A model generated the notes under the pieces. That model was not told where the DNA came from. It did no database searches and worked only from the letters and a program-made list of their open reading frames with translations. The translations under genes were made by a program, and so were the position numbers. From Octopus bimaculoides (lineage: Eukaryota), in contig NC_068982.1 of NCBI RefSeq assembly GCF_001194135.2, forward strand, positions 121,485,844 through 121,549,843: DNA of 64,000 bases, read 5' to 3'. This document shows, in pieces, positions 3,855 to 64,000 of this stretch (the stretch's first letter is position 1; every line of letters starts with the position of its first letter).

Positions 3855-4960
3855 TATGGATCATCCCATACATATGCACAAATATTCTCTAAGGATTGGT
3901 ACCGAATCCTCTCTGAATCACTTCTACATGCTCTATCTATCACTCCCATATACTCTATGGATCCCATATGTTCTATGGATCACTCCTATATGCATTATAG
4001 ATCACTCCCACATCTCTTTTACTCTTTTACTTGTTTCAGTCATTTGACTGCAGCCATGCTGGAGCACCGCCTTTAGTCGAGCAAATCGACCCCAGGACTT
4101 ATTCTTTGTAAGCCTAGTACTTATTTTATCGGCTCTTTTGCTGAACTGCTAAGTTATGGTGACGTAAACACACCAGCATCGGTTGTCAAGCGATGTTTGG
4201 GGGGAAAAACACAGACACACAAACATACACACACACACACANNNNNNNNNNNNNNNNNNNNNNNNNNNNNNNNNNNNNNNNNNNNNNNNNNNNNNNNNNN
4301 NNNNNNNNNNNNNNNNNNNNNNNNNNNNNNNNNNNNNNNNNNNNNNNNNNNNNNNNNNNNNNNNNNNNNNNNNNNNNNNATATATATATATATATACATA
4401 TATACGACAGGCTTCTTTCAGTTTCCGTCTACCAAATCCACTCACAAGGCTTTGGTCGGCCCGAGGCTATAGTAGAAGACACTTGCCCAAGATGTCACGC
4501 AGTGGGAATGAACCCGGAACCATGTGGTTGGTAAGCAAGCTACTTACCACACAGCCACTCCTGCACTGGAATCACTTTCACATGTTCTATAGTTAGCTTC
4601 AATATACTCTATAGATCATTCTTGTATGCTCTATGATCTTTCCTGCATGGTCTATGATCACCTTTGCATGCTCTATAGATGACTTCTACATGCTCTAAAG
4701 CTTACTCACCCTGATCTGTAAGTCACTGTCATATTTCCTCTGAATCATTCACATATGATCTAGAGATCATTCACCCATACACTACAAATCATTCTCACAT
4801 GTTTTTTGGATCACTTCTACATACACTATAATGTATACATCACACCCACATGTTCTATGGATAACTTCCATATTCTTTATGTAAAATCACTTCCACATGT
4901 CTGTTGATCATTCCTATATTCTAGATTACTTACACATTCTCTAAGTATAAATCACTCCTA
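3855..4960. repeat. Degenerate minisatellite of about 22 bp (atgctctatggatcactcc-like), split by a SINE
   Basis: Recurrent ctatggatca / ctatagatca units on both sides of the SINE. Confidence 0.7.
4023..4562 (-). mobile_element. SINE family A (spans an N gap), inserted into a 22-bp minisatellite
   Basis: Reverse complement of the family A head and tail. Confidence 0.85.
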
Positions 4961-11499: not shown

Positions 11500-11931
11500 T
11501 GGCACCACTGTTCGGGCATGATCGTTACCAGTGTCACCTTCCTGGCACTTGTGCCGCAGCTTCATGTTCCTGGCACTTGTGCCGCAGCTTCATGTTCCTG
11601 GCACTTGTGTCGGTGGCACATGAAAAGTCATTCGAGCGAGATCGTTGCCACTGCTGCTGGACTGGCTCCAGTGCAGGTGGCACGTAAAATACACCATTTT
11701 GAGCATGGCTGTTGCCAGTACTGCCTGACTGGCCTTCGTGCCGGTGGCACGTAAAAGCACCCACTACACTCTCAGAGTGGTTGGCATTAAGAAGGGCATC
11801 CAGCTGTAGAAACTCTGCCAGATCAGATTGGAGCCTGGTGCAGCCATCTGGTTCACCAGTCCTCAGTCAAATCGTCCAACCCATGCTAGCATGGAAAGCG
11901 GACGTTAAATGATGATGATGATGATGATGAT
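11500..11931 (+). mobile_element. RTE 3'-UTR copy with an internal 28-bp tandem duplication (11541-11610)
   Basis: ...ccaacccatgctagcatggaaagcggacgttaaa(tga)n. Related copies lie near 5720-5790, 23040-23280, 29800-29932, 34920-35060, 37310-37420 and 39360-39590. Confidence 0.85.
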
Positions 11932-13194
11932 TGCAGAAAAACTGGCATAAGAAGGCTTTTATTGCCATCTCCTGAACACCAAAAAAATCAAGGATACAAG
12001 ATAAATTTTTGATCAATGAACTGAAGTGATCTGAATGCAGGCAGGTGAATAATTCTCTTAATAACTCTAAATTTGATATATGATGTTGTAATTATGATAT
12101 CTATCAGGGGAATCAGCAGCAGAATATTAGATATCATGTTATGTATAGTTTACTTTTATTTTTGTTAGTGTTGTTGACTTGTTGCAGTTTTACTATAGAA
12201 TGGGACAACTGGGCACAACTGTTTGGGTGCTAAACTATTTTGGTGATGACACTTTTAATGATATACATTTTGCATTGAAAGCAGACACACACACACACAC
12301 ACACACACACATGGAAACACACATATACAAAAAGAAGGAGAGAGAAAGAGAAACATTAATAGACTACACTTGGTAAAAAAGAGATAGAGAAGCAAAGGGG
12401 AAGAGAAAAACTCTTAAATGGATTGAAAAATTAACCTAATAGACACAAACACGAAAACATCTGTCTCTACATACACAAAAAAATATATGCATACACATGA
12501 AGACAGAGTGAGAAAGAGAGAGAGAGAGANNNNNNNNNNNNNNNNNNNNNNNNNNNNNNNNNNNNNNNNNNNNNNNNNNNNNNNNNNNNNNNNNNNNNNN
12601 NNNNNNNNNNNNNNNNNNNNNNNNNNNNNNNNNNNNNNNNNNNNNNNNNNNNNNNNNNNNNNNNNNNNNNNNNNNNNNNNNNNNNNNNNNNNNNNNNNNN
12701 NNNNNNNNNNNNNNNNNNNNNNNNNNNNNNNNNNNNNNNNNNNNNNNNNNNNNNNNNNNNNNNNNNNNNNNNNNNNNNNNNNNNNNNNNNNNNNNNNNNN
12801 NNNNNNNNNNNNNNNNNNNNNNNNNNNNNNNNNNNNNNNNNNNNNNNNNNNNNNNNNNNNNNNNNNNNNNNNNNNNNNNNNNNNNNNNNNNNNNNNNNNN
12901 NNNNNNNNNNNNNNNNNNNNNNNNNNNNNNNNNNNNNNNNNNNNNNNNNNNNNNNNNNNNNNNNNNNNNNNNNNNNNNNNNNNNNNNNNNNNNNNNNNNN
13001 NNNNNNNNNNNNNNNNNNNNNNNNNNNNNNNNNNNNNNNNNNNNNNNNNNNNNNNNNNNNNNNNNNNNNNNNNNNNNNNNNNNNNNNNNNNNNNNNNNNN
13101 NNNNNNNNNNNNNNNNNNNNNNNNNNNNNNNNNNNNNNNNNNNNNNNNNNNNNNNNNNNNNNNNNNNNNNNNNNNNNNNNNNNNNNNNNNNNNN

Positions 13195-15609: not shown

Positions 15610-15834
15610 TTACAAGCTGATATCCATAAACTGTTGTTCAGCTTCAGAAGTTACATCATCCCCATTTAATGATTCCACAGAATCTTCTGATGACTTTCTT
15701 CTTGTAACGAGTGCTATGTTACTCTCATCATTGCTCTCTGTTGGGGTCTTCAAGAGGTAACGTCCTGATAGATGCAACAGAGTGGCCCCAAATGGTGCAG
15801 TTAAAAGGATGGCTAACACTGTCATCTTCAAAAC
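15610..15834 (-). CDS. SLC9B2-like: SLC9B/NHA-like terminal coding exon (VLKMTVLAILLTAPFGATLLHLSGRYLLK...MDISL*)
   Basis: Acceptor ctgctttgcag, 225 nt ending in TAA followed by a second TAA. Matches NHA2 VLTVAFLSILITAPIGSLLIGLLGPRLL. Confidence 0.92.
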   Translation of the reverse strand, partial: VLKMTVLAILLTAPFGATLLHLSGRYLLKTPTESNDESNIALVTRRKSSEDSVESLNGDDVTSEAEQQFMDISL

Positions 15835-16244: not shown

Positions 16245-17184
16245 GTTTTACTTATGTAATGACATCTGTGTTCTCATCAGCACAACCATTCTAGAATCAA
16301 TATAATTTTCAGAACTGTACACGAATTGTCTTCATGAAATAAGACTTGCATACAGTTCTACTGATTACATTGGGGATATTTTTCAAAATGCCTCAGCTCT
16401 GGCACACCAAATTCCGGAAACAATTCTGCAGAGAATAATTCACTGCAGTATATGTTGCCGGCTGGAGAACATAACTATTTAAATTATCATTTATATAGAT
16501 AGGGTGATAAATTGAATATTAATTCAATTTAAAACCAAGTGGCCTAGCATATAAAAAAATCTGAAAATTCAGAAAAATTGTATTACACGTGTATAAGGGA
16601 TGACCACGAGGTGGACATCCAATATGCTAGAAAGAAGTCATCAACGACCCAACCACAAAGAAAAATAATGTTCTCCAGATGAAATTTCAAAAAACACCAG
16701 AACAGGAAAAAATGAAAAATATACAGAATAAAGAATTAGTTGTGTACTGCAGTTTCGAACATTAATGTTTTTACTTATGTAACCAGATCCGTGTTATCGT
16801 CAGCACAACCGTTCTAGAATCATGCTAGGCCACTTGGCTTTAAATTGAATTCATCATCATCATCATCGTTTAACGTCCACTTTCCATGCTAGCATGGGTT
16901 GGACTATTTGACTGAGGACTGGTGAAATGGGATGGCAACACCAGGCTCCAATCTAATTAATATTCAATTTATCACCCTATCCATACAAATAATAATTTAA
17001 ATAGTTATGTTCTCCAGCCGGCAACATATACTGCAGTGAATTATTCTCTGCAGAATTGTTTCCAGAATTTGGCGTGCCAGAGCTGAGGCATTTTGAAAAA
17101 TATTCCCAATGTAATCGGCAGAACTGTACGCAAGTCTTATTTCATGAAGACAATTCGTGTACAGTTCTGAAAATTATATTGATT
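16245..17184. mobile_element. Non-autonomous Penelope-like insertion (about 523-nt unit plus inverted arm), interrupted by an RTE 3' tail at 16852-16954
   Basis: Direct repeats about 16245-16299 and 16766-16821. Arm 16295-16550 is inverted to 16822-16851 plus 16955-17184. An aatt duplication flanks the RTE tail. Confidence 0.6.
16739..16809 (-). ncRNA. Type I hammerhead ribozyme motif of a second family (long stem-loop II)
   Basis: Minus strand reads GUUGUG CUGACGA UAACA...UGUUC GAAA CUGCA GUA CACAAC. The partial upstream copy (about 16245-16286) has CUGAUGA GAACA, which restores the G-C closing pair of stem II. Confidence 0.65.
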
Positions 17185-19496: not shown

Positions 19497-19568
19497 TATA
19501 TAACCATAGGGTTGTAGAATTTCATCCCCTAGATCAAGGGCATTTTGTAGAATATATGCAGCTAGAAC
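19497..19568 (-). CDS. SLC9B2-like: SLC9B/NHA-like exon (VLAAYILQNALDLGDEILQPYGYI)
   Basis: Acceptor ctctctatctgtttcag, donor |gtaagt, 72 nt, phase 0 to 0. Positional match to NHA2 AAIGSVALDTARSHGEKQLEDYGMD. Confidence 0.85.
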
Positions 19569-21414: not shown

Positions 21415-22370
21415 AGCATGGAAGGTGGACATTAAACAATGTTAATGATGATGATGTATGTATGTATGTATATGTACAATGAACATGTATGTGTGCATGC
21501 ATATAGCTATGTGTATGCATCTTTGTGTTGATGCTTGTCCTCTACCACCACATGACAACCTGTGCTGGTTTGTTTATGTCCCTGTAAGTTACTGGTTCAG
21601 GAAAAAGTGCTGCAGTTGATTTGTTTGACTAAATCCTTCAAAGCAGTACTCCAGCATGGCCTAAGAACAATGACTGAAACAAGTAAAAGGCGTAGTGTAA
21701 ATGATATAACCATTCTTACTTCTCTATTACATGTGTTTGCATAATCAGCAGAGTAAAACTCAATAAAGATTCAAGAATCTACAGCTTCTAATGAAATATG
21801 CAGATTCTTCTTGATATGTTGAGTGTACACTTTTTCTTCATTCGTAAACTCAACATGCACTGATCTATATAAATACGTAAGTTTGTATACCAGCATGCAT
21901 ATTTGCATATGTCTGTTTTTGTGGGACTGTGTGTGTGTCTGTGTCTGTGTGTGCATGTATGTATGCTAGCATGGATAATGCAATTTAAAAAGGAAGTGTT
22001 TCTGTTACGCATTCTAGAATAAAACAAAAAAAAAATTAACATACATCATGCATGTGTGCATACACATGCATACATGCGTGCTCACACACACACACACACA
22101 TGCAAACACACAGACATGCACACACACTCACATACTCACACACATCCATACATATTACTGAAACTTCAGATATATTTTCCAAGCCACATGTATGTTATGT
22201 TTTCTATGAAAGTTTTATTGAACTGACATAAATTAACACTATTCCTCTCAATTTATATATACTTACATATGTGTGTGTGTATACATACATACATACATAC
22301 ATACATACATACATACATAAATACATACATGCATACATTCATACATCCATACATATATATNNNNNNNNNN

Positions 22371-22590: not shown

Positions 22591-23811
22591 TATGAAGATC
22601 TCTGTGTATATTTGTGTCTACATATGTTTTATATCTATGTATATTTTATAAATGTACATATTTTATATATGCCTATATATGTATATTTGTACATGTGTGT
22701 AGATATAAATGTTTAAAAGCATTTAAGTTTACATGCAAATTTATCTATATATATATGTATGTCTCTTTCACTTTTTATTCTTTGAATTTTTTTCTATAAA
22801 GTGGAAGCAGGTTTCTAACTAAGAATCAAAATTCTGTTATTCAAATTTAATTTTAAGCATCAACAAAAGAGTGTGATGCATGTTGCAAGACTTGCTGCAA
22901 AGCAAGCAGAATGAAGTAGCTAGGAATGTTGCATAGTATGTATGTATGCACATACAAATGTACATATAGGCATGTGTGTGTGTATATATATGTATATGTG
23001 TGTGTGTGTGTGTGTATATACATATATATATATATGGTGCTGGTGCCATGTAAAAGCATTAGTGCTGGTGCTATGTGAAAAGCACTTGTGCTGGTGCCAC
23101 ATAAAATGCACCTAGTACACTTTGTAAAGTAGTTGGTGTTAGGAAGGGCATCCAGCTGTGAGGGACCATGCCAGAACAGACAATGGAATCTGCAGCCCTT
23201 AGCCTTACTAGCTCCTGTCAAGCCATCCAACCTACGTCAGCATAGAAAGCGAACATTAAATGATGTTGATGATGATGATATATGTACATATATATGTATG
23301 TTTATGTACATATGTATGTATGTTTATGTATATATAAATGTTTGTGTGTTTGTGTGTATGTGCATATATCCCCATGATCATTGTCATCATCATCATCACC
23401 ATCATCATCATTACCACTATCATCCTTATTTCAAAGTCTACTTTTCTATGCTGGTGTGGGAGACATGATTCCAATGAGGCAGAATTTTCTGCAGCTGGAT
23501 ACCTATTCTGTCACCAACCTTCACCTGTTTCCAAGCAAGGTAAAGATGCTTCAGTCTGTTAAGCAACAAATGACCCAAACTACACGCATATAACACAATT
23601 TGTGAGAACAGTCACACATTATTTACAATCACTGTGTGCACATCAAGCCAAGGAAAGCATACACTCAGTCACACATGTGCACACACACACACACACACAT
23701 ACGCACACACACACACACACACACGTATGCACGCATGCATGCACGTACACACACACACACACAATGCTGATGCATTTTCTCTGAATATATCTATGGAAAT
23801 GTAAAGAGTAC

Positions 23812-23948
23812 CTGACTTTCAGCTTTTGGTAGCAAAGCCAAACTGCAGTAGACCCGTTCCCTCTTGGTGATCTGAGTCCTAACCATCACAACATACGATA
23901 TCACAAACCGCACTAAGAGACCAGTGAACAAACATACAAATACAAAAC
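23812..23948 (-). CDS. SLC9B2-like: SLC9B/NHA-like exon (G-FVFVCLFTGLLVRFVISYVVMVRTQITKRERVYCSLALLPKAESQ)
   Basis: Acceptor ttcttcttgtag, donor CAG|gtactc, 137 nt, phase 1 to 0. Matches NHA2 GIAVLIRILTTF...KEKIFISFAWLPKATVQ. Confidence 0.92.
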
Positions 23949-25654: not shown

Positions 25655-25772
25655 CAAGTATTCTGGCATTGATCACAGATAAGTTGACATCACAGCCCAT
25701 GAGGCCAAACAGCAGTGTCTGACAAAATAGCCAGAGTGTATTCAGTATGGCATCCACTTTATGCAAGAGCAT
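25655..25772 (-). CDS. SLC9B2-like: SLC9B/NHA-like exon (MLLHKVDAILNTLWLFCQTLLFGLMGCDVNLSVINARIL-G)
   Basis: Acceptor ttttgttgcag, donor G|gtaaat, 118 nt, phase 0 to 1. Matches NHA2 VEKIIAVAWDIFQPLLFGLIGAEVSIASL. Confidence 0.92.
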
Positions 25773-26877: not shown

Positions 26878-27039
26878 CTGATTGGTCTTAAGTCCTTTCT
26901 TCCACCCCCAGGCTGCTACATAGCTGAGAACGAGGACAGCAAGGTGACCAACAAATGTCTGGTGAACGGCAGAAAGGGTGAACAATACCAAAGCACTGGA
27001 ACCAACCAGAAAGACACAACGGAAGAATAAATTGTGAAC
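26878..27039 (-). CDS. SLC9B2-like: SLC9B/NHA-like exon (VHNLFFRCVFLVGSSALVLFTLSAVHQTFVGHLAVLVLSYVAAWGWKKGLKTNQ)
   Basis: Acceptor cttctacttccag, donor CAG|gtatgt, 162 nt, phase 0 to 0. Matches NHA2 KRTFLVLGLSVLAVF...LCTLVMAFLAGMGW. Confidence 0.88.
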
Positions 27040-28966: not shown

Positions 28967-31287
28967 ACTTGTTTATATAGTTTAAATAAAAATCTTAAAA
29001 AATTTTTCTACTCATTGATCCTCATATACTTTAAATATGAAATCAAATTCTTGAGCATTTTCCCAATTATTTGACCACTTTAATTTGCTCTGTATAGGAT
29101 AACTTACTTCCTTTTCGGTCAATCTTTGTAACTCACTTCATCCATGGCCAGTCTAGTTAAATCACCTCATTTGGGTGAACTTAGCTTATCTTTGGTCAAT
29201 TTTAGCTATCTCACTTCACCTTCGGTGAGCAATATATAACTTACTTCATCTTTAATCAACCCTAGTTATTTTATCATATCTCTTGTTATATCCAACAAAA
29301 TTACCTTAAGTTTACCACAGCTTTCTACCGCCCTAGCTGATCTTATCATCCAGTCTTCACTTACATCATGCAATATTATCAGTTTACTACATCTGATCCG
29401 TTAGTCAACCTTCACTAATCTGTTGACACCACCACTGATTCATAAACTAATTCTTTGTTTTTGGTTATAGTAGATGAAATTCAGATCATCTCACTAACAG
29501 CTTACCTCTACTCAATGAAAGTTGTTGACTTTTAAAGTACTTCACTAAATCTATTAAAACAAATGTCTATACTAAACCGCTACACTGAACTACTATAGTG
29601 AACCACCACACTTAGTTACTATATCCAGCAATCAGTATCTACAATCAGTAGATACAGGTTCCCATTATGACTGTACCGATTTAATCAATATATTCTGAAG
29701 AATATCTCAATATTTCTAATAAAATCATACACCCATTCTAAACAATTGCATCATTGGCTCTAAGAACCCTTTTTCTTATGATCCCTGATTAATGTACCCT
29801 GGGCATCCAACTGTAGAAACTCTGCCAAATCAGATTGGAGCCTGGCGTAGCCATCTGGTTCACCAGTCCTCAGTCAAATCGTCCAATCCATGCTAGCATG
29901 GAAAGCGGACATTAAACGATGATGATGATGATTAATGTTCCCTATAAAGTGATCCAAAAATCACTTTACATGGCACAATTCCCTTCCACAGTTCTCTTGC
30001 CTACTGTTTCCTATTTTGCCATTCCTGTTCAGCTTCCAATCACCCAATACTCCCTTAAAAGGTTATTCAGTACAACAATTCACATATCTCTGTAGAAAAT
30101 TACAAATGTTCGCATCAGCATGCTGTGACAAATGTATAGGAGAGAGATGATTTAGTTGATTGAAAAGGACCCTAATAGTATGACTTGTATTAATCTAATC
30201 ACACTTATTGTTATTAGATTGATGATGATGAAAAGAAATGTTAAACTCTGATGTGATTTGAATTCAGAATTAAAGGTAAATGCAAAGGAAAAACTGTTCA
30301 ACATTTTGTCTCTCGCTCCATAATATCCTGCTACAACTCCACCACTTTATCACTATGGAAGATCATAAGACAATATATATAATTTTACAATTATAGAAGA
30401 CAAAAAACTACATATTCAGAATAAAATTACAACTTCTTAATTAGTTTAATAAATTTAACAGAATTACGGAACTTAAATCTGTGATGCTAGCTTTCTGAAG
30501 TGTGATTATACAATTGATGTCACCATGTGATTCTAGATTTTTACAATGTGATAGTCATTTAGCATCATTCCAACACCTAGCACATTTAGTATCTTCTTAC
30601 TATGCAAATGTTTAATTAATTTAATAAAACTGATGAACTATATCCAGTGTTACTAGCTTTAGAAAAAAAATCTCTAAATTGAGTAAAGTCTTATTGTGAT
30701 TAACTAATAACTTGTACAGTAAAGTTTCTCAATGCAAAGCTAATGCCTTTCCTTAGCAACACCTCTGTTAGATTTTAGTGTACCCCCAAGTTAATCTCTT
30801 CTATAACCAATAAGAACCACCTACTTTAGAAGCCATAGCTCCAGCAATTCAATAATTTTCTTACCTCACTTGATACTTTTCTCTATCAGATATGGTAAGA
30901 TGGAAATAAAAACCTGCAGCAGATTTAATAAGAGAAGAGAATCTTGTGATAATCTGTCGAAGAAATCCCTGAATCTCATTCACTGTCATCTAAGATTATT
31001 GATTTATTTTCACTGTTGCAGTATCTTGGAGAAGAAAAAAGAAAAAAAAAATTCTCTCTCAAAATAATTTCACCTAAATTCTACAATATGAATTTCCTGG
31101 TTTTATTCCATTCCAGTCGCTTTTCGTGTCATTTTATCTCACTGTCTTTCCCAATGCACATATAAACACACACACATTATGCACACTCACATATGCACAC
31201 ACATATGCATACACCCACCCACATACACCACTGAACTCTTTCTACATTTTCTACCATTGATTTATATTTTCTCCATCTCTTTCCGCT

Positions 31288-37213: not shown

Positions 37214-37267
37214 CCATTCTATCAATGTATCTATCAATCTATCTATTTGTTTGCATACATACATACA

Positions 37268-37298
<31 letters not shown>

Positions 37299-37598
37299 GT
37301 TGTTTGTCATCATCATCATCATTTAACATCTGTTGTCCATGCTGGCATGGGTTAGAGGGTTTTACCAGGGCTGGTAAGCTGAGGGGCTGCACCAGACTCC
37401 AGTCTGATTTGGCATGGTTTCTAGACAGATATGTGATATTACATAATGTCACTGCTTGTTTCTAACTAATGGATCAACTACAAAGAGGCTTCTTCAGTTT
37501 AATGTAATCAAGTAAGTTTCATAAATGAAGAAAGCAGTTAAAAATGGTTTTATGTTACAAGGAATTTTGTTTCAAATCATTGATTGTTGGTAACTTAC

Positions 37599-37705
37599 AA
37601 AATCTTCAGGTGGAATATAGCACAGAAGAATTCCTACAATAACTCCAACAAGAATTTCTCCAAATGGTTCCAATAATTTCAGAATGATGTTTGCCGCATT
37701 ATTTT
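37599..37705 (-). CDS. SLC9B2-like: SLC9B/NHA-like exon (E-NNAANIILKLLEPFGEILVGVIVGILLCYIPPEDF)
   Basis: Acceptor tctcccttctaag, donor |gtaagt, 107 nt, phase 1 to 0. Matches NHA2 ...LEVVIGVATGSVLGFFIQYFPSRDQ. Confidence 0.88.
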
Positions 37706-38602
37706 CTTAGAAGGGAGAGTAAAAGAAAATTAGTTTTCACAGGTTAAACATGATTAAAACTTTAATTAAAATATCTATAACTTCATCAACAGTACCAATA
37801 AATAAGATTGGCCTTTTGAAATATTATTAAGAAATAAATTTGTTCACATTTAGCACATTCTTTTATGAATCTATTTCTGTATATTTACTGGAATTGTCAT
37901 TATAGACAGGACAATTGATTAACAAATATTACTTGTTCAGTCTCCTTATTTACAAAGTTTATCTACTACACAATGTGTATAATTATCCAGTTAACATCTA
38001 TGCACACACGCGCGCGCGTGCACACACACACACACACACACTTGTGTATGCATATCTATCTATCTATGTATATATATATGAAATTTATTGAATGTTGGAA
38101 TTTGTATGAACATTTGTTTTTCTGAATCTTTTCTTGAACCTTTAAATGTTGAAACTGGTCTGATATTTTATTAAATTTGTTAAAAAAATTCAAAGCTATA
38201 GACTCAGGTACCCAAAACTAACTCTCCTATATCCTTTCTTGCATGAGAATAAGCCTTTTTCTCCATATGTCATCATTATCATCATCAGCATTTAATGCTC
38301 ACCTTCCATGCTAGTATGGGTGGGACATATAAATAAATATATATATATATATATAAATTAAAACAGTAGGGTAAAAAATTGGATATTAATTAATATCAAT
38401 TTAATACCAGGGAACAAGCACATTAAATGAATCAAGGAGATTCAGAAAATATCTGTTTCTCATCAGTATGGACTGCCAAATAAATATAATTCCCAGAATC
38501 GCATACTAGTTGTTCCCCATGCATTACATGTGATCTTCTTCTAGCACATTAACAGTCCACCTAGTGGTCTCCTTTATATATATNNNNNNNNNNNNNNNNN
38601 NN

Positions 38603-39106: not shown

Positions 39107-39819
39107 TGGGGAGAATATGTGTTATACATTGGCGGAGACAATATATGTTATTATTTAGTTCCAGGTCAGCTCTGATGAAGGAAACCAAGAAGCACATCAT
39201 TTTATCCTATCCTTATTTCTTCAGACACAGTTATAAATTGTGATGCCATTTCTCTGAGATAACATGATGTGGTTTGAAGGACTTCTTGCTTTTATTTCTA
39301 GCTGGTTAACTGATCATAAAGAAACTTACTTATTGGCTATTTGTATATATATATATACACCATTTTGAGCGTGACAGTTGCCAGTACCGCCTGACTGGCC
39401 TTCGTGCGGCAGACACGTAAAAGCACCCACTACACTCTCTGAGTGGTTGGCGTTAGGAAGGGCATCCAGCTGTAGAAACTCTGCCAAATCAGATTGGAGC
39501 CTGGTGTTGCCATCCGGTTTCACCAGTCCTCAGTCAAATCGTCCAACCCATGCTAGCATGGAAAGCGGACGTTAAACGATGATGATGATATATGCATTGT
39601 GTGTGCATGTTGTATGCATGTGTGTGTGTCTGTGTGTCTGTGTCTGTGTGTCTGTGTCTGTGTATGTGTTGCAATTATGAGTAACAGAGAGACTTAATAG
39701 GATAGAAAGTGACAGAGATGTTCACACAGTAGCAAAAAGAGATAGAAATAAAGAGAGAAAGGAAGGAGAAAGAAAGAGGGAGAAACAGAAAAGTGTGCAA
39801 GTATATTTATGATCGTGTG

Positions 39820-39850
<31 letters not shown>

Positions 39851-39902
39851 CTGTGTGTGTGCATAGAAAGAGAATGAGAAATGTAGAGAAGTAATGTTAT
39901 AC

Positions 39903-40060
39903 CTGTAGACCACGTGATTGCAACAATTACTGCAGCAAAGATATTGTTGACAATGAGTGCAGCAGCAATTTGTGACTGAATGCTGTTGGTATGTCGCAGG
40001 TTCTGTATTTGAAGCAGCAGTGTTAATATGATGGATGGCGATACTGAACTGATAATACTT
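39903..40060 (-). CDS. SLC9B2-like: SLC9B/NHA-like exon containing the ion-binding motif ([52 protein letters not shown])
   Basis: Acceptor tttctctgttgacag, donor G|gtataa, 158 nt, phase 2 to 1. VSP motif present; AAALIVNN aligns to NHA2 MAAGSFDD. Confidence 0.9.
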
Positions 40061-40091
40061 CTGTCAACAGAGAAACACGTGTGTGTGTGTG

Positions 40092-40176
<85 letters not shown>

Positions 40177-44463: not shown

Positions 44464-44643
44464 CCTAAAGATATACTCCATGACCAAGGTAATTTTGTAA
44501 TAAATCTGTACATACAAGCAGAGGTGAAAAGTTCAACTGCAAATGGCAATGAATGCAGGCGATAGAAGATATTGCTAGAACCTCTCCGAATTGACATTAT
44601 CTTGAAACCAGTTCGAAGAAGCAGAATGGTTAATGCAAAGTTC
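44464..44643 (-). CDS. SLC9B2-like: SLC9B/NHA-like exon (R-NFALTILLLRTGFKIMSIRRGSSNIFYRLHSLPFAVELFTSACMYRFITKLPWSWSISL-G)
   Basis: Acceptor ttcatcttctttag, donor GG|gtaagt, 180 nt, phase 2 to 2. Matches NHA2 RSIALSIILVRAG...PCIVEACT...LPWQWGFILG. Confidence 0.92.
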
Positions 44644-47340: not shown

Positions 47341-47630
47341 TCACTATCATCATCCTCATCATCATCATCATCATCATCATCATTTACCATTCATTTTCCA
47401 TGCTGGCATGGGTTGGACGGTTTGACTGAAAACTAGTAACCTGGGGAGCTGCACCAGGTTTCAGTCTGATTTGGCATGGTTTCTAGAGCTGGATACCCTT
47501 CCTAATTTCAACCACTCTAAGTGTATAGTGGGTGCTTTTTATGTACCACCAGTACAGGTGCCATTTACAAAACACTGGCATTGGCCACTACTATGATCTC
47601 ACTTGGCTTGACAGGTCTTCTCAAGCACGG
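47341..47630 (-). mobile_element. Older 3' fragment of the same RTE family
   Basis: Same 3' UTR and (GAT)n tail, more diverged. Confidence 0.75.
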
Positions 47631-47631
47631 T

Positions 47632-50010
47632 CATCATCATCATCATTATCGTTTAACGTCTGCCTGCCATGCTAGCATGGGTTGGACGATTTGACTGAGG
47701 ACTGGCGAACTAGAAGGCTGCACCAGGCTCCAATCTGAGCTGGCAGAGTTTCTACANNNNNNNNNNAGGCTGCACCAGGCTCCAATCTGAGCTGGCAGAG
47801 TTTCTACAGCTGGATGCCCTTCCTAATGCCAACCACTCCGAGAGTGTAGTGGGTGCTTTTACGTGCCACCGGCCCCAACTACGATTTCACTTGCTTTGAC
47901 GAGTCTTCTCCCGCACAGCATATCGCTCAATGTTCAAAGGGTGCTTTTTACGTGCCGCCAGCATGAGTGCCAGTTACACGACATTTGGATTGGCAATGAC
48001 TGTGATTTCACTTGGCTTGTTGAGTCTTCTCAAGCATGGCATATCGACAAAGCTCTCGGTCACTTGTCATTGCCTCCGTGAGGCCCAACGTTCAAAGATC
48101 ATGCTTCATCACCTCGTCCTATGTTTTCCTGGGTCTACCACTTTCACAAGTTCCCTCCACAGTTAGAGATCAGCATTTCTTCCCACAGCTGTCCTCGTCA
48201 ATATGCCTTACATGACCATAACTGCACAGTTGTCTCTCTTTCACACCACATCTGATACCTCTTATGTCCAACTTTTCTCTCAAGACGCTTACACTCTGTT
48301 GTACATGCACACTGACATTGTACACCCAGCAAAGCATACTAGCTTCATTTCTTTCATGACTTCGCATGTCCTTGCTGATCACAGCCCATGTTACACTGTC
48401 GTGTAGCATGGATGTTCGCATGCAGGCGTCATACAATCTGCTTTTCACTCCGATGGAGAGACCCTTTGTTACCAAAAGAGGTAGGAGCTCTCTGAACTTT
48501 GTCCAGCCTATTCTTATTCTAGCACCGATGCTCTTGGAGCATCCACCTCCGCTACTGACTTAGTCACTTAGGTAACAAAAGCTATCAACTATTTCTAATT
48601 TTCCCCGCCTGACATTTGGTGAAGTCTATTTTTTGTACATTTTTAGTGTTAATTGTACCTGTGCACATTCCACACACAAAAGCTATTTTCCCTGTTAACC
48701 TTCCTCTGATATTGCTACACCTCTTATGTGTCCATAGCTTATACCGGGTACATCTTGTGGAATTACTACCTATGCTTTTTCTACAGTTCAAGTAGGGCCA
48801 TCTACGAGAAGGAATTTGTGATTTGTCTCCTTTCTTTCTACCTAAGACTTTCGTTTTTGCTAGCTTTTTGATTCTAGACCTTGCTTCCACACCTGAAATT
48901 TCTTCTCTAGTTCTGGTAGTGGCTATAAGAAGAAGGTCATCAGCATAGAGGAGCTCCCAGGGCAGCCCACCTTAAATTCCTCTGTTATTGCCTGGAAGAC
49001 TATGATGAACAAGAGGGAGTTGATCCTTGGTGAATCCCTACTTTTACCCTGAATTCTTTGCTATACATGTTGCTAACCTTTACCTTACTGACAGCATCTC
49101 TATACATGGCTTGTACAGCTCTCACCAATCACACATCTATCCCTAGCTTTCACATTGACCACCAGATAAGGGAGCGGGGGACTGTGTCAAAGGCTTTCTC
49201 CATGTCAACAAAAACCAGGTACAAAATTTTATTTTTGGCTAGATATTTCTCTTGCAGTTCCCTAACCAGGAGTATAACATCAGTTGTGCTCCTGCTTAGC
49301 ACAAATCCGAACTGCATCTCATTTACACTAACTCTCACCCTAATCAATTGAGCTATGACTCTTTCTGTGTCTTTCATCACCTGGTCTAGCAGTTTGATGC
49401 CTCTGTAATTATTCCTAAGGCGTCACCTTTGCCTTTGTAGCAGTTGACTATGATGCTGCTACACCAGTCGTTGGGTATGACTCCCTCATGGACAACCTGG
49501 TTAACTATACAGGTGACTAGGCTATAACCTACTCTACCAGATATTTTAAGCATCTCATACGAGATTCCTGATGGGCCCGGGGCTTTCCCTGTCTTCATGT
49601 CCTTAATTGCTTTATCTATTAAGCTGCTGTCGATTCGGATAGCTGGTCCCTCAGTTGGGTCAGTCTCTCTTTCTCCCATTCATTCTCCACATTCAGCAGT
49701 CTTTCATAATGGCATCTCCAAGCCTCTTTCTTTGCAGAATCATTAAACGCGGACACGTTTCTCTCCTATGACATCACGATTTTCTCTCACACACTGTCTT
49801 GCAATCTGGAACACTTCAAGTCTCAGGTCCTCACGTCGCACAACATAGACAAACTCCTTCTTTTCTGCTTCTCCCTTGGCTAGATATACCTGTCTCCTAG
49901 CTTCCCTTCTGGATCTCTGATACAGTTCTCTGCTACCCCCACACTGCTAGTTCTTTCAGGCCTGTTTCTTTGCTCTAACGGCCTTGTCTACAGTATCGTT
50001 CCACCATTTG
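47632..50010 (-). mobile_element. 5'-truncated RTE-clade LINE (ORF2 RT region, frameshifted)
   Basis: WWND, GKAPGPSGI, QFGF, FVDMEKAFDTV and LLYADDL motifs. 3' UTR ends in (GAT)n. Confidence 0.92.
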
Positions 50011-51640: not shown

Positions 51641-53411
51641 CGGAGTTTTCTTTCCTCAGTCGAGATCCAGATTATCTTTTCAATTTCGGCTGGTTATTCT
51701 CGATATTGCTCCAATCTGGCCAGCCCCAAGGAAAAACTAAGCTATGAGCTGCCATGGAAGAAAGCAGCGAATGTATACAAAAACAAGGACGGAAAAAAAT
51801 GTATGTATGTATGCATGTCATTGTTCAGTTTTATTTCAAGATTTCTTGCCAATAGAGAAAAATCCAGTTTCTAACCTAGATTCAAGGCTCCTTCATTGGA
51901 ATTTCAACATCAACAACAGGGTATTTTGTTTGTTTGTTTGTATGTATGCATGTATGTATCTGTGCAGATTTGTACGTTTTGTTTTATGTATGTATTCTCA
52001 TGCATATAGTTGCATATCTAGACATGCTCATTTATATTTAAATGATAAACTTCTAGAAAGTTTTACAGATTTTTACAGTTCCAGTGATGGATTGGATCTG
52101 TAGCCTTCGAATTAACTTTCTCCTTTCTGGTTTTTAGAAGCTTAATTTCTCAAGATTGGTATTTAGGCAGTATGTTACATATCTCAGGGCCCGTATGTAT
52201 GTATGTATGTATGTATGTATGTATGTATGTATGTATGTATGTATGCATGCATGCATGTATGTATGTATGTATGTATGTAAACTTATGTATATACGCACAT
52301 ACATATTGATGTCGACAGAGCAGCGTGAACATGTAACAGGTGTGATATACGGACGCTACACAGTATTATAGCTAGAACTGAAATGTTCACATTAAAATAT
52401 TTGTACGCATGTGTGCTAGAATGTTGCGAGTGCTTGAATAATGCGTGCGAGTAATTGCAGATATACACACCCGCACACACTCACACATAAGGGTACTGTG
52501 TGTATATTTCACTGGCCTGTCTATTTATTTCCTCTTCGGTGTGTATCTAGGCATGTGTATATGCAAGTTGATACAGTTATATTTTCGTGTGTGCATTTGC
52601 TGTATCCTTTAGTTGTGGGTGGGCTATCCAGTTATGTAATTGGCTATTGTTTATATAGCGTGACATAATGGTTATGAAGTGCATTCGCTAGGTGGTTTCA
52701 ATGTAATTTCAATATTATTAATTTGGGATAAGGTATGCAGTGCATTATGGAGAAGTATGTGTCGACCTGTGTGTGTTTGTGCGTGTATACGCACGCGCCC
52801 GCGCGCGTGTGTGCATGTGTATGTGTATGTTTAGCGAGTGGAGTCGAAGAGTATGGAAGTGCCCTAAGGTTTTCCATTGGTCATCCCCCCCGTACTCTCA
52901 GATATCACTCGCTGCACACACAAACACAAACACACAAACACAAACACACACACATACACACACGCACACACATACACACACACACACACACACATACACA
53001 CACATGCACATGCACTCGTAGTTTTCATCAGTTTTTTGTTGTTAATATAAAGTTCTCAATATTTTATATGATGATTATTAATATTCGCATGAAACCATTG
53101 GTATCTTATTAACAGCACTCTATTATTAAAAGAATGTGTGTGTGTGTGTGTGTGCGTGTGCGCGCGCACACGCGAGTATATNNNNNNNNNNNNNNNNNNN
53201 NNNNNNNNNNNNNNNNNNNNNNNNNNNNNNNNNNNNNNNNNNNNNNNNNNNNNNNNNNNNNNNNNNNNNNNNNNNNNNNNNNNNNNNNNNNNNNNNNNNN
53301 NNNNNNNNNNNNNNNNNNNNNNNNNNNNNNNNNNNNNNNNNNNNNNNNNNNNNNNNNNNNNNNNNNNNNNNNNNNNNNNNNNNNNNNNNNNTATATATAT
53401 ATATATATATC

Positions 53412-55192: not shown

Positions 55193-55540
55193 TATAAATA
55201 TCTATATTTTCTTACTTAAAAAAATTCATCATCTAAAAGTTTCTACCTTTTGCTTTCTCTTGTTTTGCATGTACACACACACACACACACACATATATAT
55301 TGTATTTGATGTGCTTAATATATTTAATATATTTGNNNNNNNNNNNNNNNNNNNNNNNNNNNNNNNNNNNNNNNNNNNNNNNNNNNNNNNNNNNNNNNNN
55401 NNNNNNNNNNNNNNNNNNNNNNNNNNNNNNNNNNNNNNNCGTACTTATGTATGTTTGTATGTGTATATGAAGTAGGCACTTATTCTAGCGAGGAACATTT
55501 TACCCTGTTCTGCCATATTTATTATTATTATTATTACTAC

Positions 55541-56744: not shown

Positions 56745-57346
56745 GCNNNNNNNNNNNNNNNNNNNNNNNNNNNNNNNNNNNNNNNNNNNNNNNNNNNNNN
56801 NNNNNNNNNNNNNNNNNNNNNNNNNNNNNNNNNNNNNNNNNNNNNNNNNNNNNNNNNNNNNNNNNNNNNNNNNNNNNNNNNNNNNNNNNNNNNNNNNNNN
56901 NNNNNNNNNNNNNNNNNNNNNNNNNNNNNNNNNNNNNNNNNNNNNNNNNNNNNNNNNNNNNNNNNNNNNNNNNNNNNNNNNNNNNNNNNNNNNNNNNNNN
57001 NNNNNNNNNNNNNNNNNNNNNNNNNNNNNNNNNNNNNNNNNNNNNNNNNNNNNNNNNNNNNNNNNNNNNNNNNNNNNNNNNNNNNNNNNNNNNNNNNNNN
57101 NNNNNNNNNNNNNNNNNNNNNNNNNNNNNNNNNNNNNNNNNNNNNNNNNNNNNNNNNNNNNNNNNNNNNNNNNNNNNNNNNNNNNNNNNNNNNNNNNNNN
57201 NNNNNNNNNNNNNNNNNATATATACATACATGTATTTACATATCTATATATTGCGTGTGCGTGTGTGTGCACGCGTGTCTATGAATGTACATACGTGTGT
57301 GAACATATATATAATATAATATATATGTATGTATGTGTATATATAT

Positions 57347-58837: not shown

Positions 58838-58925
58838 CTGAGACATGATGTCCAGTGGGGTAGAATATGTTGGGCAATGTTAATATGGGGTACATTTCTC
58901 ACAAGTACCCCGACCAAAAACATAC
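58838..58925 (-). CDS. SLC9B2-like: SLC9B/NHA-like antiporter, most 5' exon found (G-MFLVGVLVRNVPHINIAQHILPHWTSCL-R)
   Basis: Acceptor ttttgcctgtag, donor AG|gtatat, 88 nt, phase 1 to 2. Aligns with human NHA2 GMLLAGFLIRNIPVINDNVQIKHKWSSSLR (recalled sequence). Confidence 0.9.
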
Positions 58926-59288
58926 CTACAGGCAAAAGAAAGAATTACATCATTACCATATACTACGACATAGATAACTGGTTTATATCGTGTGGTGTGT
59001 TTATATGTGAGTGGGTATGTTTCTGTACTTGTGTTCTCATATATGTGTGTGCCTGTGTATGCGTGCGTGTGTGTGTATGCATGCGTGCGTGTGTGTATTC
59101 CTGTGTAACTGTGAATGTATGTCTGTATGTATCCCATTTCTGCGAGATGTTTCTGTGTAACTGTGTATATTCTTATATGCGCGTACTTGCATGTATGAGT
59201 GTGTATGTATGTGCGCGCGCACGCATGTGTGTGTGTGTGTGTGTGTGCACGTCTGTGTGTGTGTGTGTGTGCGCGCACATCAGTGTGT

Positions 59289-59326
<38 letters not shown>

Positions 59327-59964
59327 CTATAAGACACCCAATCAAGCAACTAGAGAAGAGGAATAGTTGAAGGACTTCAAAAGAAAAAAAAAAAAAAATG
59401 AAAATATGACTGTTTATGGCAGTGTTTGTCTCTTTATCATGTCTCTTATTTTATCTCATCTCCCACCTTCCTATCTGTCTTTATCTTACTCTATTATCAC
59501 TGTAAACTGCTGGCACTTATTTGTCTAACAAAGAAAGTCAACAAACACCCCCCCCCACACACACACACTAAATAAATAAATAAATACATAAATAAAACAG
59601 ACTATCGCACAATGCAATACCAAGTATGATAATAATTCTGAGATTTGAGTGTTTATCCAATATCAAACAAAAGAAAGCACAGAATAAGTAGGAGTAGCCA
59701 GCAGGAACTCGCAAATATAAAACAAGGTAACAAATACTCACTAAAACATAAACTAAGACAAATCATTAAAAAAAAGAACGGAAGTACTGCTGATGTCTTC
59801 CGCTAAGTGCTTGGCTCCAAACAATGATCTTTTGCCTCACGAAGCTGCACGGCAGTCAAAAGAACGAAGAACCATCAGATAACAACCAACACTCGAAAAG
59901 GCAAAGACAGCACATCCACAACGATGCAACCTTTGTTTTGTATGTATGTATGTATGTATGTATG

Positions 59965-60022
<58 letters not shown>

Positions 60023-62309
60023 CACACACACATGCTACTACACACATGCTACCACACACATGCTACCACACATATGCACACACATCTCATATAAGTATGT
60101 AAGTATGTATGTATGTATGTATATTATCAACCTACAAATCTCTCTTTGAAATTCACTAAATTCAGCCACTACTACACTTATATTACGAACTCGATACGAA
60201 GAACATACGGCGGCTATAAAAACACCAACAACAACACTCTACACACCATACTTGTTTCTTTTGGGATCGAACACGAGATGCTATGATACACATGTCCATA
60301 CACACACACGCATGCGCACGTACACACGTGCACACACATTAGGATATCTAATGTATGCACGTATACCCACGATATAACATGACTGCATTACACGCATATA
60401 AAGGGCTATATTATTAATGTGCCATTTAAGAGTGTGTCATTTAAGGTAAATTCAATTCTTATATCTAGCAAGTCGAGCAACCATGTAGATATTCCCTTGT
60501 AGTCTCGTACGAAGCTTATATGAGGACCAAGAAGAAATAAATCAGTATTTTCAAGAATGTCATTCTTAGGAATTGAAATACTCAGTTTTTTAGCGATATG
60601 ACATTCTTGATGAAAACAAAAATGGTCATAAGAGTGGGAAAAGGGCTAAGCTGCCTTAGGAACTTTTGAACCCAGAACCCAGAGTAACAGTTATTCACTG
60701 GGACAGGAACCGTCATAAGTGATTAATTTATATTTATAAATGAGATTGTGTGGTATTCTTGCATTTCTTAGGAATATCAGTGCTGAAAGTGAATCGAAGT
60801 CGCTTCTGATCGAAAGCAAAACTACATCACAGTCTAGTCTTGTCGGCTTTTAGCTCTTGGGCACCAAATTTAGATACTTGTTTTACGAAGTACTAAAGCC
60901 TTATATTTTGGAACAGCTCAATAAATCGATCCCATTATTCTCTAGAATTATATTTTATCGACACCGGAAGGATGAAAAGCAAAGTCGACTCCCCAGCGGG
61001 ATTTGTATTGAGTGAACATTTTAAGGAACTTAACTATATAGCGCATGGCCTTTTATCTGTGGATTTTGCTCTCCATCATTCTCCATTGATATAACAGGAA
61101 TAATTTCTTTTGTTAGTAGAAGACCATAAGTTTTGTAAAGAAGAAATGGTCAATTCTATTGAACAAGTACACAAGTGGCACTGCTTGTTTTATCGACCTT
61201 GCATAAATGAAAGACTAATCCGTCCCTAACAGGACTTGAACTCAGGATGTTGGTAGATGAAGCCAAATCCTCTAAATCATTTAGTTCAGCACACTATCAA
61301 TGGTGTGTTTCCATATCTCTTTCTCTACTATTTTCATTTGTTCAGGAGATACATTCTGTGATATTGTTATATTTCGGGACGGTCACTTTTTTTTTTTGCC
61401 AAATAAATACACGCACTATATATTCGTTCTTCACTTCAGCTTTATTATTGTTTTTATTTTAGTGTCTAAAATAAGAACAATAATAAAGCTGAACTGGCAA
61501 AAAAAAAAAATTATCATCCCTAAATATAACAATATCTGTTTCAACATACGATTTCACATGAAGAATCTTGCAAAATCCTATGATATCTGTCTTTTCATGA
61601 GCTTCAATAAATTCACTGAACTGAATTTGTATTCAACTAGGAAACAAAACTATGTCACAGACTCACATAGGGCTTACATCAATCCAACAGCACTTAAAAC
61701 AGATGAGGATTAGATTCATATGCAGCAAACCCCACATCATATTGAGTGATATCTGCAAGTAATGAGATTTGTATTTGATTTATACAAAATTCAACACTGC
61801 TATGATTCTGGGAAGATTAGGATAACGCTCTTCTGAAATAAGAATAAGGACAACTAAAAAATGACGTTTCCACGAAGGAAACAGCAGGAAGTGAAAGTTA
61901 TAGTCGTATTTAACTGTGATCGGAAATATTACGTCAACGATATTCTTGTTCTATGCAAATTAGCATTTTTTTTTGGGGGGGGGGGCAAAGCACATATAAA
62001 TTGACGGAATTACAGATTGAGGTTGGGGAATCATATTTTGCTGGGAAACGATTTAGTATTAAATTCTATTTAAGCAGTTTCTTCTTTAAACATGAAGAAA
62101 AAAAATTTCCCAGAGGTTTGTCAGTTTTAGAACAGAACTACAATATTTGGTGTTCTATGAGATTAACTGTTGAAGAATTAACGGAAGATAAGAAGCTGGG
62201 GCGGAGCAACAGTAACAAACAAAACTATAACGACATATAGAAGTTGCTACAGAAATATCAGCATTATATTCAGTAACAAAGAGACGACGACGACGGTGAC
62301 GGCTGCGGC

Positions 62310-62432
62310 GAAGAAGAAGAAGAAGAAGAAGAAGAAGAAGAAGAAGAAGAAGAAGAAGAAGAAGAAGAAGAAGAAGAAGAAGAAGAAGAAGAAGAAGAAG
62401 AAGAAGAAGAAGAAGAAGAAGAAGAAGAAGAA
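62310..62432. repeat. (GAA)n microsatellite. Other long ones: (AG)n 39006-39102, (TAT)n 55520-55610, (TATG)n 34030-34270
   Basis: Direct inspection. Confidence 0.95.
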
Positions 62433-63463
62433 ATCAACACATTGAACAAGAAAAAATGCAATAGGAACAACACAAAATAGAACTACAACAACAGCTCCAA
62501 TAAAAATTGGTATATCAGATATTATCTATCAGTTATTAATAAATGGCTGGGGGCAGAACGAAACGGAGCACGTATCATTTTCTTTATATTTTATTTCCAA
62601 GAAATCAGAAAAAAACCCAGAAATGCTGAAGTATTATGACAATGAACAATCACTGTTTCAGAAATATTATATCAATCGTCTCTGATTGGCCTGACTGACT
62701 CAAGCAAAGGCAATCTGATTGGTTACCAATATGGAAGCAGCTGATTAGTAACTATTTTAACATGCTATATATTTTACATTATTTCTTGTACTTTTATATG
62801 CATTATTTTTTTTTATTTTAGTAGGATAAGAAATGTGGGAGATGGAAGAGTATGCTTAAAAAAAAATTTCCAACTAGGTTGGCGTATTTAGTTATATAAG
62901 AAAATAGGATCAATTGTTGATTAAGGATCATCCAAAGCAGATTGTGCTTTAAAAATGGACAGAAAATTAGATTTGATTAGAGGAAAAGAAGTTTCTTTGA
63001 AATCTGTCAGATGTAAAGATAATATATATATTTTACCCCTTTTTATTCCTTGAAAAGAGCCTAATTTTCTGTGATATGGAGTCATGGTAGGACTCTTTTG
63101 TCTGGAGGTTATTTTCTTGTAGCTTCAAACATAAATACTTTATCCATTCTCTTTCACAAACGTTTCTTTTTTTTTGTCTGGTTGTTTTCTTGCATGTTTT
63201 TTTTTTGCTCTCTTTTCCTCGTTCACTTATCCAATCTCCCTTTCATTCTCTCAGTCTCTCTCTTTATCTAGATGTTTCTCCTTTTATTAACATCTTTTCT
63301 TTTATATTTGACTTCAAAGTCAAATTTTATTTTTTACCAATAATAGTTACTGAACTACGTTGCAAGTATAGCATATGAAGGAAAAAATTATAGCATACAT
63401 ACATACATACATACATACATACATACATACATGTAAATGCATATTCATGTATACATACATATA

Positions 63464-63499
<36 letters not shown>

Positions 63500-63893
63500 T
63501 AGATAGATAGATATAGATATATATATAGATAGATATAGATATATAGATAGATATAGATATATAGATAGATAGACATATATATANNNNNNNNNNNNNNNNN
63601 NNNNNNNNNNNNNNNNNNNNNNNNNNNNNNNNNNNNNNNNNNNNNNNNNNNNNNNNNNNNNNNNNNNNNNNNNNNNNNNNNNNNNNNNNNNNNNNNNNNN
63701 NNNNNNNNNNNNNNNNNNNNNNNNNNNNNNNNNNNNNNNNNNNNNNNNNNNNNNNNNNNNNNNNNNNNNNNNNNNNNNNNNNNATATATATATATATATG
63801 CAGAGAAGGAGGGAAAAAGAGAGAGAACATATGGAAACGGGCACTGTATATTAATATATATGTATACGTGTGTGTGTGTGTATGTGTATGTAT

Positions 63894-63962
<69 letters not shown>

Positions 63963-64000
63963 ACCGAAAGGCCATGCATTTATATAAAAAGAAAATTACC

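Follow-up and report, generated by a model that had tools for sequence, protein, structure and literature searches.

The 64,000-nucleotide stretch of Octopus bimaculoides DNA analysed here (NC_068982.1, positions 121,485,844 to 121,549,843; hereafter the window) carries on its minus strand most of a gene for a divergent SLC9B/NHA (CPA2) paralogue, whose closest characterised relatives are NHA1 and NHA2 and not the NHE, NhaP or Kef proteins. In this protein the two aspartates of transmembrane helix 6 (TM6) known as the DD motif, human NHA2 D278/D279, are replaced by two asparagines (NN), and the same holds for four other cephalopod sequences. The replacement lies at 39943..39948, whose reverse complement is AACAAT, giving the codons AAC AAT for N246 and N247. 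The other exons were located by tblastn with the NHA2 sequence, followed by inspection of splice sites. Nine exons of the gene lie within the window, all with AG/GT boundaries, compatible phases and no internal stops. When joined, they encode 415 amino acids that match residues 119-533 of XP_014780639.1 with 100% identity; this O. bimaculoides protein of 533 amino acids had been named automatically "sodium/hydrogen exchanger 9B2 isoform X1". A first-pass annotation made from the letters of the window had taken the 415 amino acids for the whole protein; they are its C-terminal 78%. A search of 58945-64000 for exons encoding residues 1-118 found none, and these residues are encoded past window position 64000. 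An apparent open reading frame (ORF) at 59500-59601 (LFMYLFIYLVCVCGGG) was considered as an N-terminal exon and rejected as low-complexity noise.

The first exon in the window (58838..58925, minus strand as for all exons below) encodes residues 119-148, with the end of TM2 and a loop (GMFLVGVLVRNVPH...SCLR); it is bounded by the acceptor tgtag/GT and the donor CAG/gtatat, and its protein match is 100%. Exon 2 (44464..44643; residues 149-208, TM3-TM5a) contains the E185 codon at 44534-44532 and the change of RAGLGLD to RTGFKI. Exon 3 (39903..40060; residues 209-261) holds both the TM5 crossover, with V214-S215-P216, and TM6 with N246-N247, and runs from the acceptor ttgacag/AAGT at 40060 to the donor ACAG/gtataa at 39903. 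Long (TATG)n, (TA)n and (CA)n microsatellites flank this exon on both sides (40080-40170 and 39820-39870). TM7, with the E277 codon at 37658-37656, is encoded at 37599..37705 (residues 262-297), and exons with canonical splice sites encode TM8-TM9 (26878..27039; residues 298-351) and TM10 (25655..25772; residues 352-390). R403, L428, K431 and E433 all fall in the exon at 23812..23948 (residues 391-435), which covers TM11 and the TM12a crossover. TM12b and a loop are encoded at 19497..19568 (residues 436-459; canonical splice sites), and the last exon at 15610..15834, which has a canonical acceptor, encodes residues 460-533 with TM13, the C-terminal tail and the TAA stop. The NCBI isoforms X1-X3 of this gene are annotation models. 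Isoform X2 (414 amino acids) starts at M120, and isoform X3 (312 amino acids) has MEYIFR as its first residues, read in a shifted frame from the last part of exon 2 (44464-44500), and joins an internal acceptor, atacag/AACCTG, within exon 3 (40060-39903), so that it is left without TM-1 to TM5.

The assignment to the NHA family was supported at the levels of domain, sequence and predicted structure. The Na_H_Exchanger domain (PF00999) was recognised in the Octopus protein with 67.6 bits and in its cuttlefish counterpart from Sepia, described below, with 77.7 bits (cut-off, 26.2), and the nearest database relatives carry a 9B2-like annotation. When the whole protein was compared by phmmer with all sequences of the Protein Data Bank (PDB), NHA2 of human (7b4l, E=3e-28) and bison (7p1i, E=1e-26) were the sole matches at E<=1. 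In these alignments the octopus IVNNIF stands opposite SFDDIL, so that NN occupies the place of human D278/D279 and bison D277/D278. The same register was obtained in four MAFFT alignments, of 5, 11, 113 and 151 sequences. The 53-amino-acid exon alone gave no match in an index of 5.8 billion proteins or in the PDB, but the peptide is too short for that index and absence is not implied. The first-pass annotation had thus recognised the gene correctly as an NHA/SLC9B paralogue and had placed NN exactly at the DD position; the spacing that it gave, 30-31 residues past the proline of the VSP motif (V214-S215-P216), holds as well, and the MAAGSFDDIL that it quoted for NHA2 agrees with the PDB sequence.

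With the alignment of 113 sequences as input, AlphaFold2 produced a model with a predicted local distance difference test (pLDDT) score of 86.4 and a predicted template modelling score (pTM) of 0.82, whereas the model from five sequences was of no use (pLDDT 35). In the former, predicted helices run from 59-81 (TM-1) to 453-486, with helix breaks at 213-215 (V-S-P) and 427-434 (P-K-A-E-S). TM6 was assigned by DSSP to helix 230-257, in which N246/N247 lie mid-helix. The best Foldseek match was NHA2 7p1k (TM-score 0.90, as for all scores here normalised to the target; root-mean-square deviation, 2.5 A), while 7p1i, which has an N-terminal extension helix, scored 0.86, and the top five matches, with TM-scores of 0.84-0.90, were all NHA2. 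The E-values for NhaP, SOS1, SLC9C1 and NapA were about 11 orders of magnitude weaker. The octopus protein is therefore predicted by the model to keep the complete 14-helix elevator fold of NHA2, including TM-1 and both discontinuous crossover helices (TM5a-b and TM12a-b). Mammalian NHA2/SLC9B2 (7P1I/J/K and 7B4L/M) is its best match in sequence, at 29-30% identity, as well as in structure. The shared features are the 14 TM helices with a domain-swapped TM-1, the discontinuous TM5 and TM12, the VSP in the TM5 break and the PKAxxQ motif.

The NN pair is not peculiar to one assembly. A cluster at 90% identity holds the O. vulgaris protein CAI9716944.1 and the partial O. sinensis protein XP_029655218.2, both with IVNNIF. 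At the corresponding loci of O. vulgaris (OX597815.1) and O. sinensis (VCDQ01000291.1), the exons have 92-99% nucleotide identity to those of O. bimaculoides, the splice sites are conserved and the codons are again AAC AAT. The O. sinensis model (332 amino acids, VCDQ01000291.1) begins with MCFSVDR, which is translated intron upstream of exon 3; its contig stops short of the upstream exons, and hence the annotation is incomplete and the start artificial. Outside Octopus, an exhaustive HMMER search that covered 1.84 billion cluster representatives revealed a single close relative (P0016, 41% identity). The other relatives had at most 37% identity over their full length, and one further protein (P0149) reached 40% over short partial stretches only. 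A profile search with 11 sequences returned three proteins and contributed nothing further. P0016 and the full-length P0171 (539 amino acids) are uninterrupted ORFs on contigs of 2-3.4 kb from many sequencing runs. The 539-codon ORF is intact on at least 12 spliced contigs that were assembled independently of one another, and the runs behind them include SRR19578114 and SRR20545808, which are juvenile RNA sequencing data of Sepia esculenta (PMC9538352). The motif of this cuttlefish protein is VINNAF, encoded by AAT AAT, and its cluster also holds an annotated fragment from Sepia pharaonis. Sequence features at both the N and C termini are common to the octopus and cuttlefish proteins.

The occurrence of NN in both Octopus and Sepia indicates that it is older than the octopus-cuttlefish split. 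The four NN sequences grouped as one clade on a long stem in a neighbour-joining tree, which did not fix the place of this clade in the metazoan radiation. So far the clade is known only from coleoids, namely O. bimaculoides, O. vulgaris, O. sinensis, S. esculenta and the S. pharaonis fragment. A search of the literature on cephalopod NHAs and on octopus "exchanger 9B2" yielded nothing relevant. In the cuttlefish the NN gene is transcribed and correctly spliced.

The coding sequences were compared among the Octopus species to assess selection. Between O. bimaculoides and O. vulgaris, the number of non-synonymous substitutions per site (dN) was 0.027 and that of synonymous substitutions (dS) was 0.108 (dN/dS 0.25), and between O. 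bimaculoides and O. sinensis the values were 0.027 and 0.128 (dN/dS 0.21). The synonymous excess was significant (Fisher p = 7e-7), and the dS of 0.108 was near the intron divergence of about 8% measured beside the exons. Within residues 236-343, a block of 108 residues from TM6 with NN through TM9, there were seven synonymous and no non-synonymous differences among the Octopus species. The gene is thus under purifying selection, and the low dN/dS together with the purely synonymous change in the TM6-TM9 block shows that it is not a pseudogene. Accordingly, two points on which the first-pass annotation had made its reading depend, that NN should mark a conserved clade and that the locus should not evolve neutrally, came out in its favour. 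We regard the identity of this gene and its conservation, as described above, as close to certain.

The changes in the cephalopod protein extend beyond the DD pair. In the 113-sequence alignment, 86 columns showed conservation across 75% or more of the other 109 sequences. Of these, 45 were kept in both lineages, 23 were changed in both, 11 in Octopus only and 7 in Sepia only. The shared changes clustered in the TM5 crossover, the GIPT loop, the DD motif and the TM12 crossover, which make up the core ion-binding region. In the TM5 crossover, VSPAVVVP became VSPSIILT in Octopus and VSTAAVLS in Sepia, and in the TM12 crossover WLPKATVQAA became LLPKAESQV and LMPKADMQVA, respectively. Replacements identical in both lineages were L121F, I155L, V220L, D246N, D247N, G277E, W428L and A436V, and there are four residues fewer downstream of the NN motif than in NHA2. 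The residues kept include E185 (NHA2 E214/E215; a position 99% conserved in the family), R403 (R431/R432), K431 (K459) and Q435. Three of the five NHA2-type site residues E214, R431, K459, T461 and W456 are therefore retained. W456, which in NHA2 is connected to the E214-R431 salt bridge (PMC8850199), is replaced by leucine in both lineages (L428, codon 23833-23835). At the position of bison T461, in the TM12 helix break, threonine is found in 92% of relatives; here it is replaced by glutamate in Octopus (E433; codon GAA at 23818..23820, PKAESQ for the family's PKATVQ) and by aspartate in Sepia (codon GAC, PKADMQ). A second acid was gained in TM7, where E277 stands in both Octopus and Sepia at a position that is glycine in 96% of relatives.

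The position of the new TM12 acid has a known role in related proteins. In bison NHA2, T461 is drawn within the ion-binding site, and its equivalent in NapA is E333; in other NhaA-fold exchangers a negative residue at this position, such as NapA E333, neutralises the half-helix dipoles (PMC8850199). In KefC, whose motif is QD, the same task falls to E337 together with K307 (PMC11150392). By alignment and model, E433 would likewise be placed in the ion-site region, and the site appears not to be free of acids. The cephalopod site underwent a coordinated rebuilding, in which two carboxylates were lost from TM6, one was gained on TM12 and another acid was added on TM7. It looks rebuilt and not decayed, and the changes were fixed before octopuses and cuttlefishes diverged.

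The DD pair itself proved to be variable across the family. Among the 113 aligned relatives, DD was found in 71, DN in 19 and ND in 7, and the rest were singles or doubles of DS, DA, DG, DQ, DT, DE, EN, ED, VD and CD, so that about 37% of these nearest representatives depart from DD. DN was frequent in arthropods and bivalves. It was found, for example, in Mytilus (XP_052079843.1), Potamilus, a crinoid, a springtail, a thrips, a mite and an ostracod, ND for instance in a chiton (XP_064597395.1) and a tunicate, and DS in Physella (XP_059167523.1). The "strictly conserved" DD thus appears, from these aligned sequences, not to be strict outside vertebrates, and names such as "sodium/hydrogen exchanger 9B2-like" may hide several transport modes. 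The NN clade belongs to the same metazoan SLC9B radiation as these variants and departs from DD as they do. It differs from them in that it alone among the 113 has neither aspartate nor glutamate at either position of the pair; all other variants keep at least one carboxylate there. The TM12 break in the non-DD variants is nearly always neutral, mostly threonine and otherwise serine, alanine, glycine or isoleucine, and the lone exception at this break is a thrips protein (P0143) that has aspartate there together with DD. The non-DD variants also evolve at the normal rate of the family and have 44-55% identity to other NHAs, compared with 29-36% for the NN clade.

Canonical DD-based Na+(Li+)/H+ exchange would not be expected to run in the NN protein, because the TM6 carboxylates are the shared Na+/Li+/H+ ligands in all characterised CPA exchangers. 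To our knowledge, the motif of every characterised CPA exchanger, whether ND, DD or QD, keeps a TM6 aspartate, the second of the pair. A neutral amide is tolerated as the first residue of the pair in KefC (QD) and in CPA1 NHE/NhaP exchangers (ND), whose helix dipoles are neutralised by an acid together with lysine or arginine; unlike the cephalopod protein, these exchangers keep the second aspartate as the H+/cation carrier. NapA of Thermus (4BWZ, 5BZ2) shares with the cephalopod protein the NhaA fold and the helix-break acid, E333, which was regained in TM12 of the latter. It differs in that it keeps DD and a lysine salt-bridged to the first aspartate, is electrogenic and has 13 TM helices, and its identity to the cephalopod protein is about 15%. 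The dependence of NHA2 itself on DD, as stated by the first-pass annotation, is documented: the D277C/D278C double mutant is inactive, and in molecular dynamics simulations no entry of Na+ into the site is seen once the aspartates are made neutral (PMC8850199). Its conclusion that the NN protein should not be a conventional Na+/H+ antiporter is reasonable in this light. It is weakened, however, by the acid at the TM12 break, which that annotation missed; it had named other acidic residues in the binding site as evidence that would speak against it, and in part such residues are found, as E433 of Octopus and the aspartate of Sepia at the NapA E333/KefC E337 position. The argument that a protein without carboxylates cannot exchange cations for protons therefore loses part of its force.

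The reading that we favour, tentatively and at a little under an even chance, is that the protein is a working elevator-type carrier with altered substrate or coupling. We favour it because the scaffold and its two crossovers are retained and selected, as are the polar and charged residues buried in the core and the TM6-TM9 block that does not vary among the Octopus species. In such a carrier the acid in the TM12 break would offset part of the negative charge lost from TM6 and would restore a dipole-neutralising residue of the kind present in NapA and KefC. The pocket would then be polar and roughly charge-balanced, lined by two asparagines, a serine and a glutamine, with one free carboxylate and one lysine. 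Two versions can be envisaged. The single TM12 carboxylate may sustain a cation/H+ cycle in which the asparagines serve as ligands, or the polar, charge-balanced pocket may carry an anion or a neutral polar solute.

Several points weigh against a working carrier of this kind. The placement of E433 depends on where bison T461 falls in the alignment and on the helix break of the model, and in NHA2 itself the T461E mutation is non-functional (PMC8850199). That glutamate and aspartate interchange at this position agrees better with a role in electrostatics or dipole neutralisation than with exact coordination of an ion. For Octopus, a search of transcript collections revealed no transcript of the NN gene, which is represented there by annotation models only. 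The NN clade evolves much faster than other NHAs: in the TM core, Octopus and Sepia share 40.6% identity and either shares 29-36% with any other NHA, whereas NHAs of molluscs, echinoderms, tunicates and vertebrates have 43-55% mutual identity. A dN/dS of 0.25 is also high for a transporter, and both this value and the fast evolution fit a relaxation of constraint after the loss of transport.

The main rival explanation holds that the protein no longer transports anything and acts as a regulatory or scaffolding partner, for instance in a heterodimer with a DD-type NHA through TM-1 and the dimer domain, or as a sensor or chaperone; we consider this rather unlikely. The absence of both essential carboxylates, the strongly accelerated evolution and a dN/dS that denotes only moderate constraint would all be accounted for, as would the predicted retention of the fold with its dimerisation helix TM-1 and a TM12 acid whose variation between glutamate and aspartate suggests structural charge balancing. 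Against this reading, the polar and charged residues N246, N247, E185, R403, K431, E/D433 and Q435, which are buried in the core, have been preserved since octopus and cuttlefish separated, a time in which about 60% of the other positions changed. The absence of amino-acid changes against seven synonymous ones in the TM6-TM9 block and the preservation of both crossover helices with their Gly/Pro framework argue in the same direction, and no partner protein is known. A further reading is that the protein has remained an ordinary Na+ (or K+)/H+ exchanger in which E433, or aspartate in Sepia, is the sole alternating carboxylate and the two asparagines are neutral ligands. Helix-break acids are conventional in CPA exchangers (NapA E333, PMC8850199; KefC E337, PMC11150392), the acid was gained along with the loss of DD and is acidic in both lineages, and the E185-R403 pair and K431 are retained. 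We nevertheless judge this improbable, since it would dispense with the TM6 aspartate kept in all characterised motifs, since NHA2 loses its function both in the Asp-to-Cys double mutant and with T461E (PMC8850199), and since the interchange of glutamate and aspartate is unusual for a residue that coordinates an ion directly. Fast evolution of the clade would also be unexpected if the ancestral function were unchanged.

Transport coupled to Cl- or another anion appears less probable still. It supposes that the loss of two negative charges beside the positive helix dipoles, K431 and R403 created an anion site. The first-pass annotation had cited Drosophila Nha1 as an H+/Cl- cotransporter, and the report exists, as described in a review (PMC9174904), but it is a single oocyte study that the review treats with caution. 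The pocket does lose two negative charges, and loss of the second aspartate (DN) is frequent in arthropod and bivalve NHAs; the gains of E433 and E277, on the other hand, put negative charge back, whereas an anion site would need the reverse. Coleoids are known to recode their mRNAs massively, and editing disfavours G as the 5' neighbour. Adenosine-to-inosine editing could thus recode AAC/AAU to GAC/GAU, so that the genomic NN would be an "off" state and DN, ND or DD would appear in some tissues or at some temperatures. Both codons are one A-to-G change from aspartate (at 39948 and 39945), and their 5' neighbours are C in Octopus and U in Sepia. Such a switch, if real, would account for the fact that only coleoids are so far known to have the clade. 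We consider it very improbable: all assembled Sepia larval transcripts read AAT AAT, the fold of about 400 nucleotides of mRNA around the codons had a z-score of about 0 in both species and predicted no double-stranded substrate, and the supplementary tables of two published RNA-editing studies contained no SLC9B entry. A restored DD site would moreover be unlikely to work beside the co-evolved TM12 acid, because T461E kills NHA2. The chance that the gene is a decaying pseudogene or an artefact of assembly or sequencing is next to nothing. Its high divergence, the lack of an Octopus transcript in the collections searched and the nine assembly gaps in the window might raise the suspicion. We rejected it because the ORF is intact and the splice sites are preserved in each of three Octopus assemblies, and on the strength of the dN/dS significantly below 1 (p = 7e-7), the synteny of the exons, the intact and expressed Sepia orthologue across a deep split and the confidently predicted fold.

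The remainder of the window is AT-rich animal DNA with dense microsatellites. Simple repeats like those beside exon 3 occupy much of it and yield most of the long spurious ORFs. The nine assembly gaps (runs of N) are at 4242-4379, 12530-13194, 22361-22370, 38584-38602, 47757-47766, 53182-53391, 55336-55439, 56747-57217 and 63584-63783; all lie in introns or flanks, and the exons of the NN gene are untouched. An interspersed repeat of about 190 bp, resembling a short interspersed nuclear element, occurs at least 10 times in the introns, in both orientations and with 70-95% identity, including those at 39400-39590, 11734-11922, 29801-29929, 16856-16958, 47370-47539, 47639-47865, 37254-37423 and 23098-23362. 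Searches of the window for a further NHA paralogue, for tRNAs and for Rfam families found nothing.

The two TM6 aspartates have been treated as the invariant heart of the CPA2/NHA exchangers. The relatives examined here imply that invertebrate NHAs vary much more at DD than a literature centred on vertebrates suggests, given that about 37% of the nearest representatives depart from it. In the cephalopods a natural lineage has been without both aspartates since octopuses and cuttlefishes diverged, and yet it is selected and expressed and carries a co-evolved acid in the helix break. A connection with the ammonia and acid-base physiology of cephalopods, as raised by the first-pass annotation, is speculation. 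For the family, the NN-type SLC9B clade of cephalopods constitutes a natural experiment on the ion site of the NhaA fold: it could show whether the NhaA/NHA2 elevator scaffold works with a relocated carboxylate, and whether it can be retargeted to another substrate or is kept as a non-transporting subunit.

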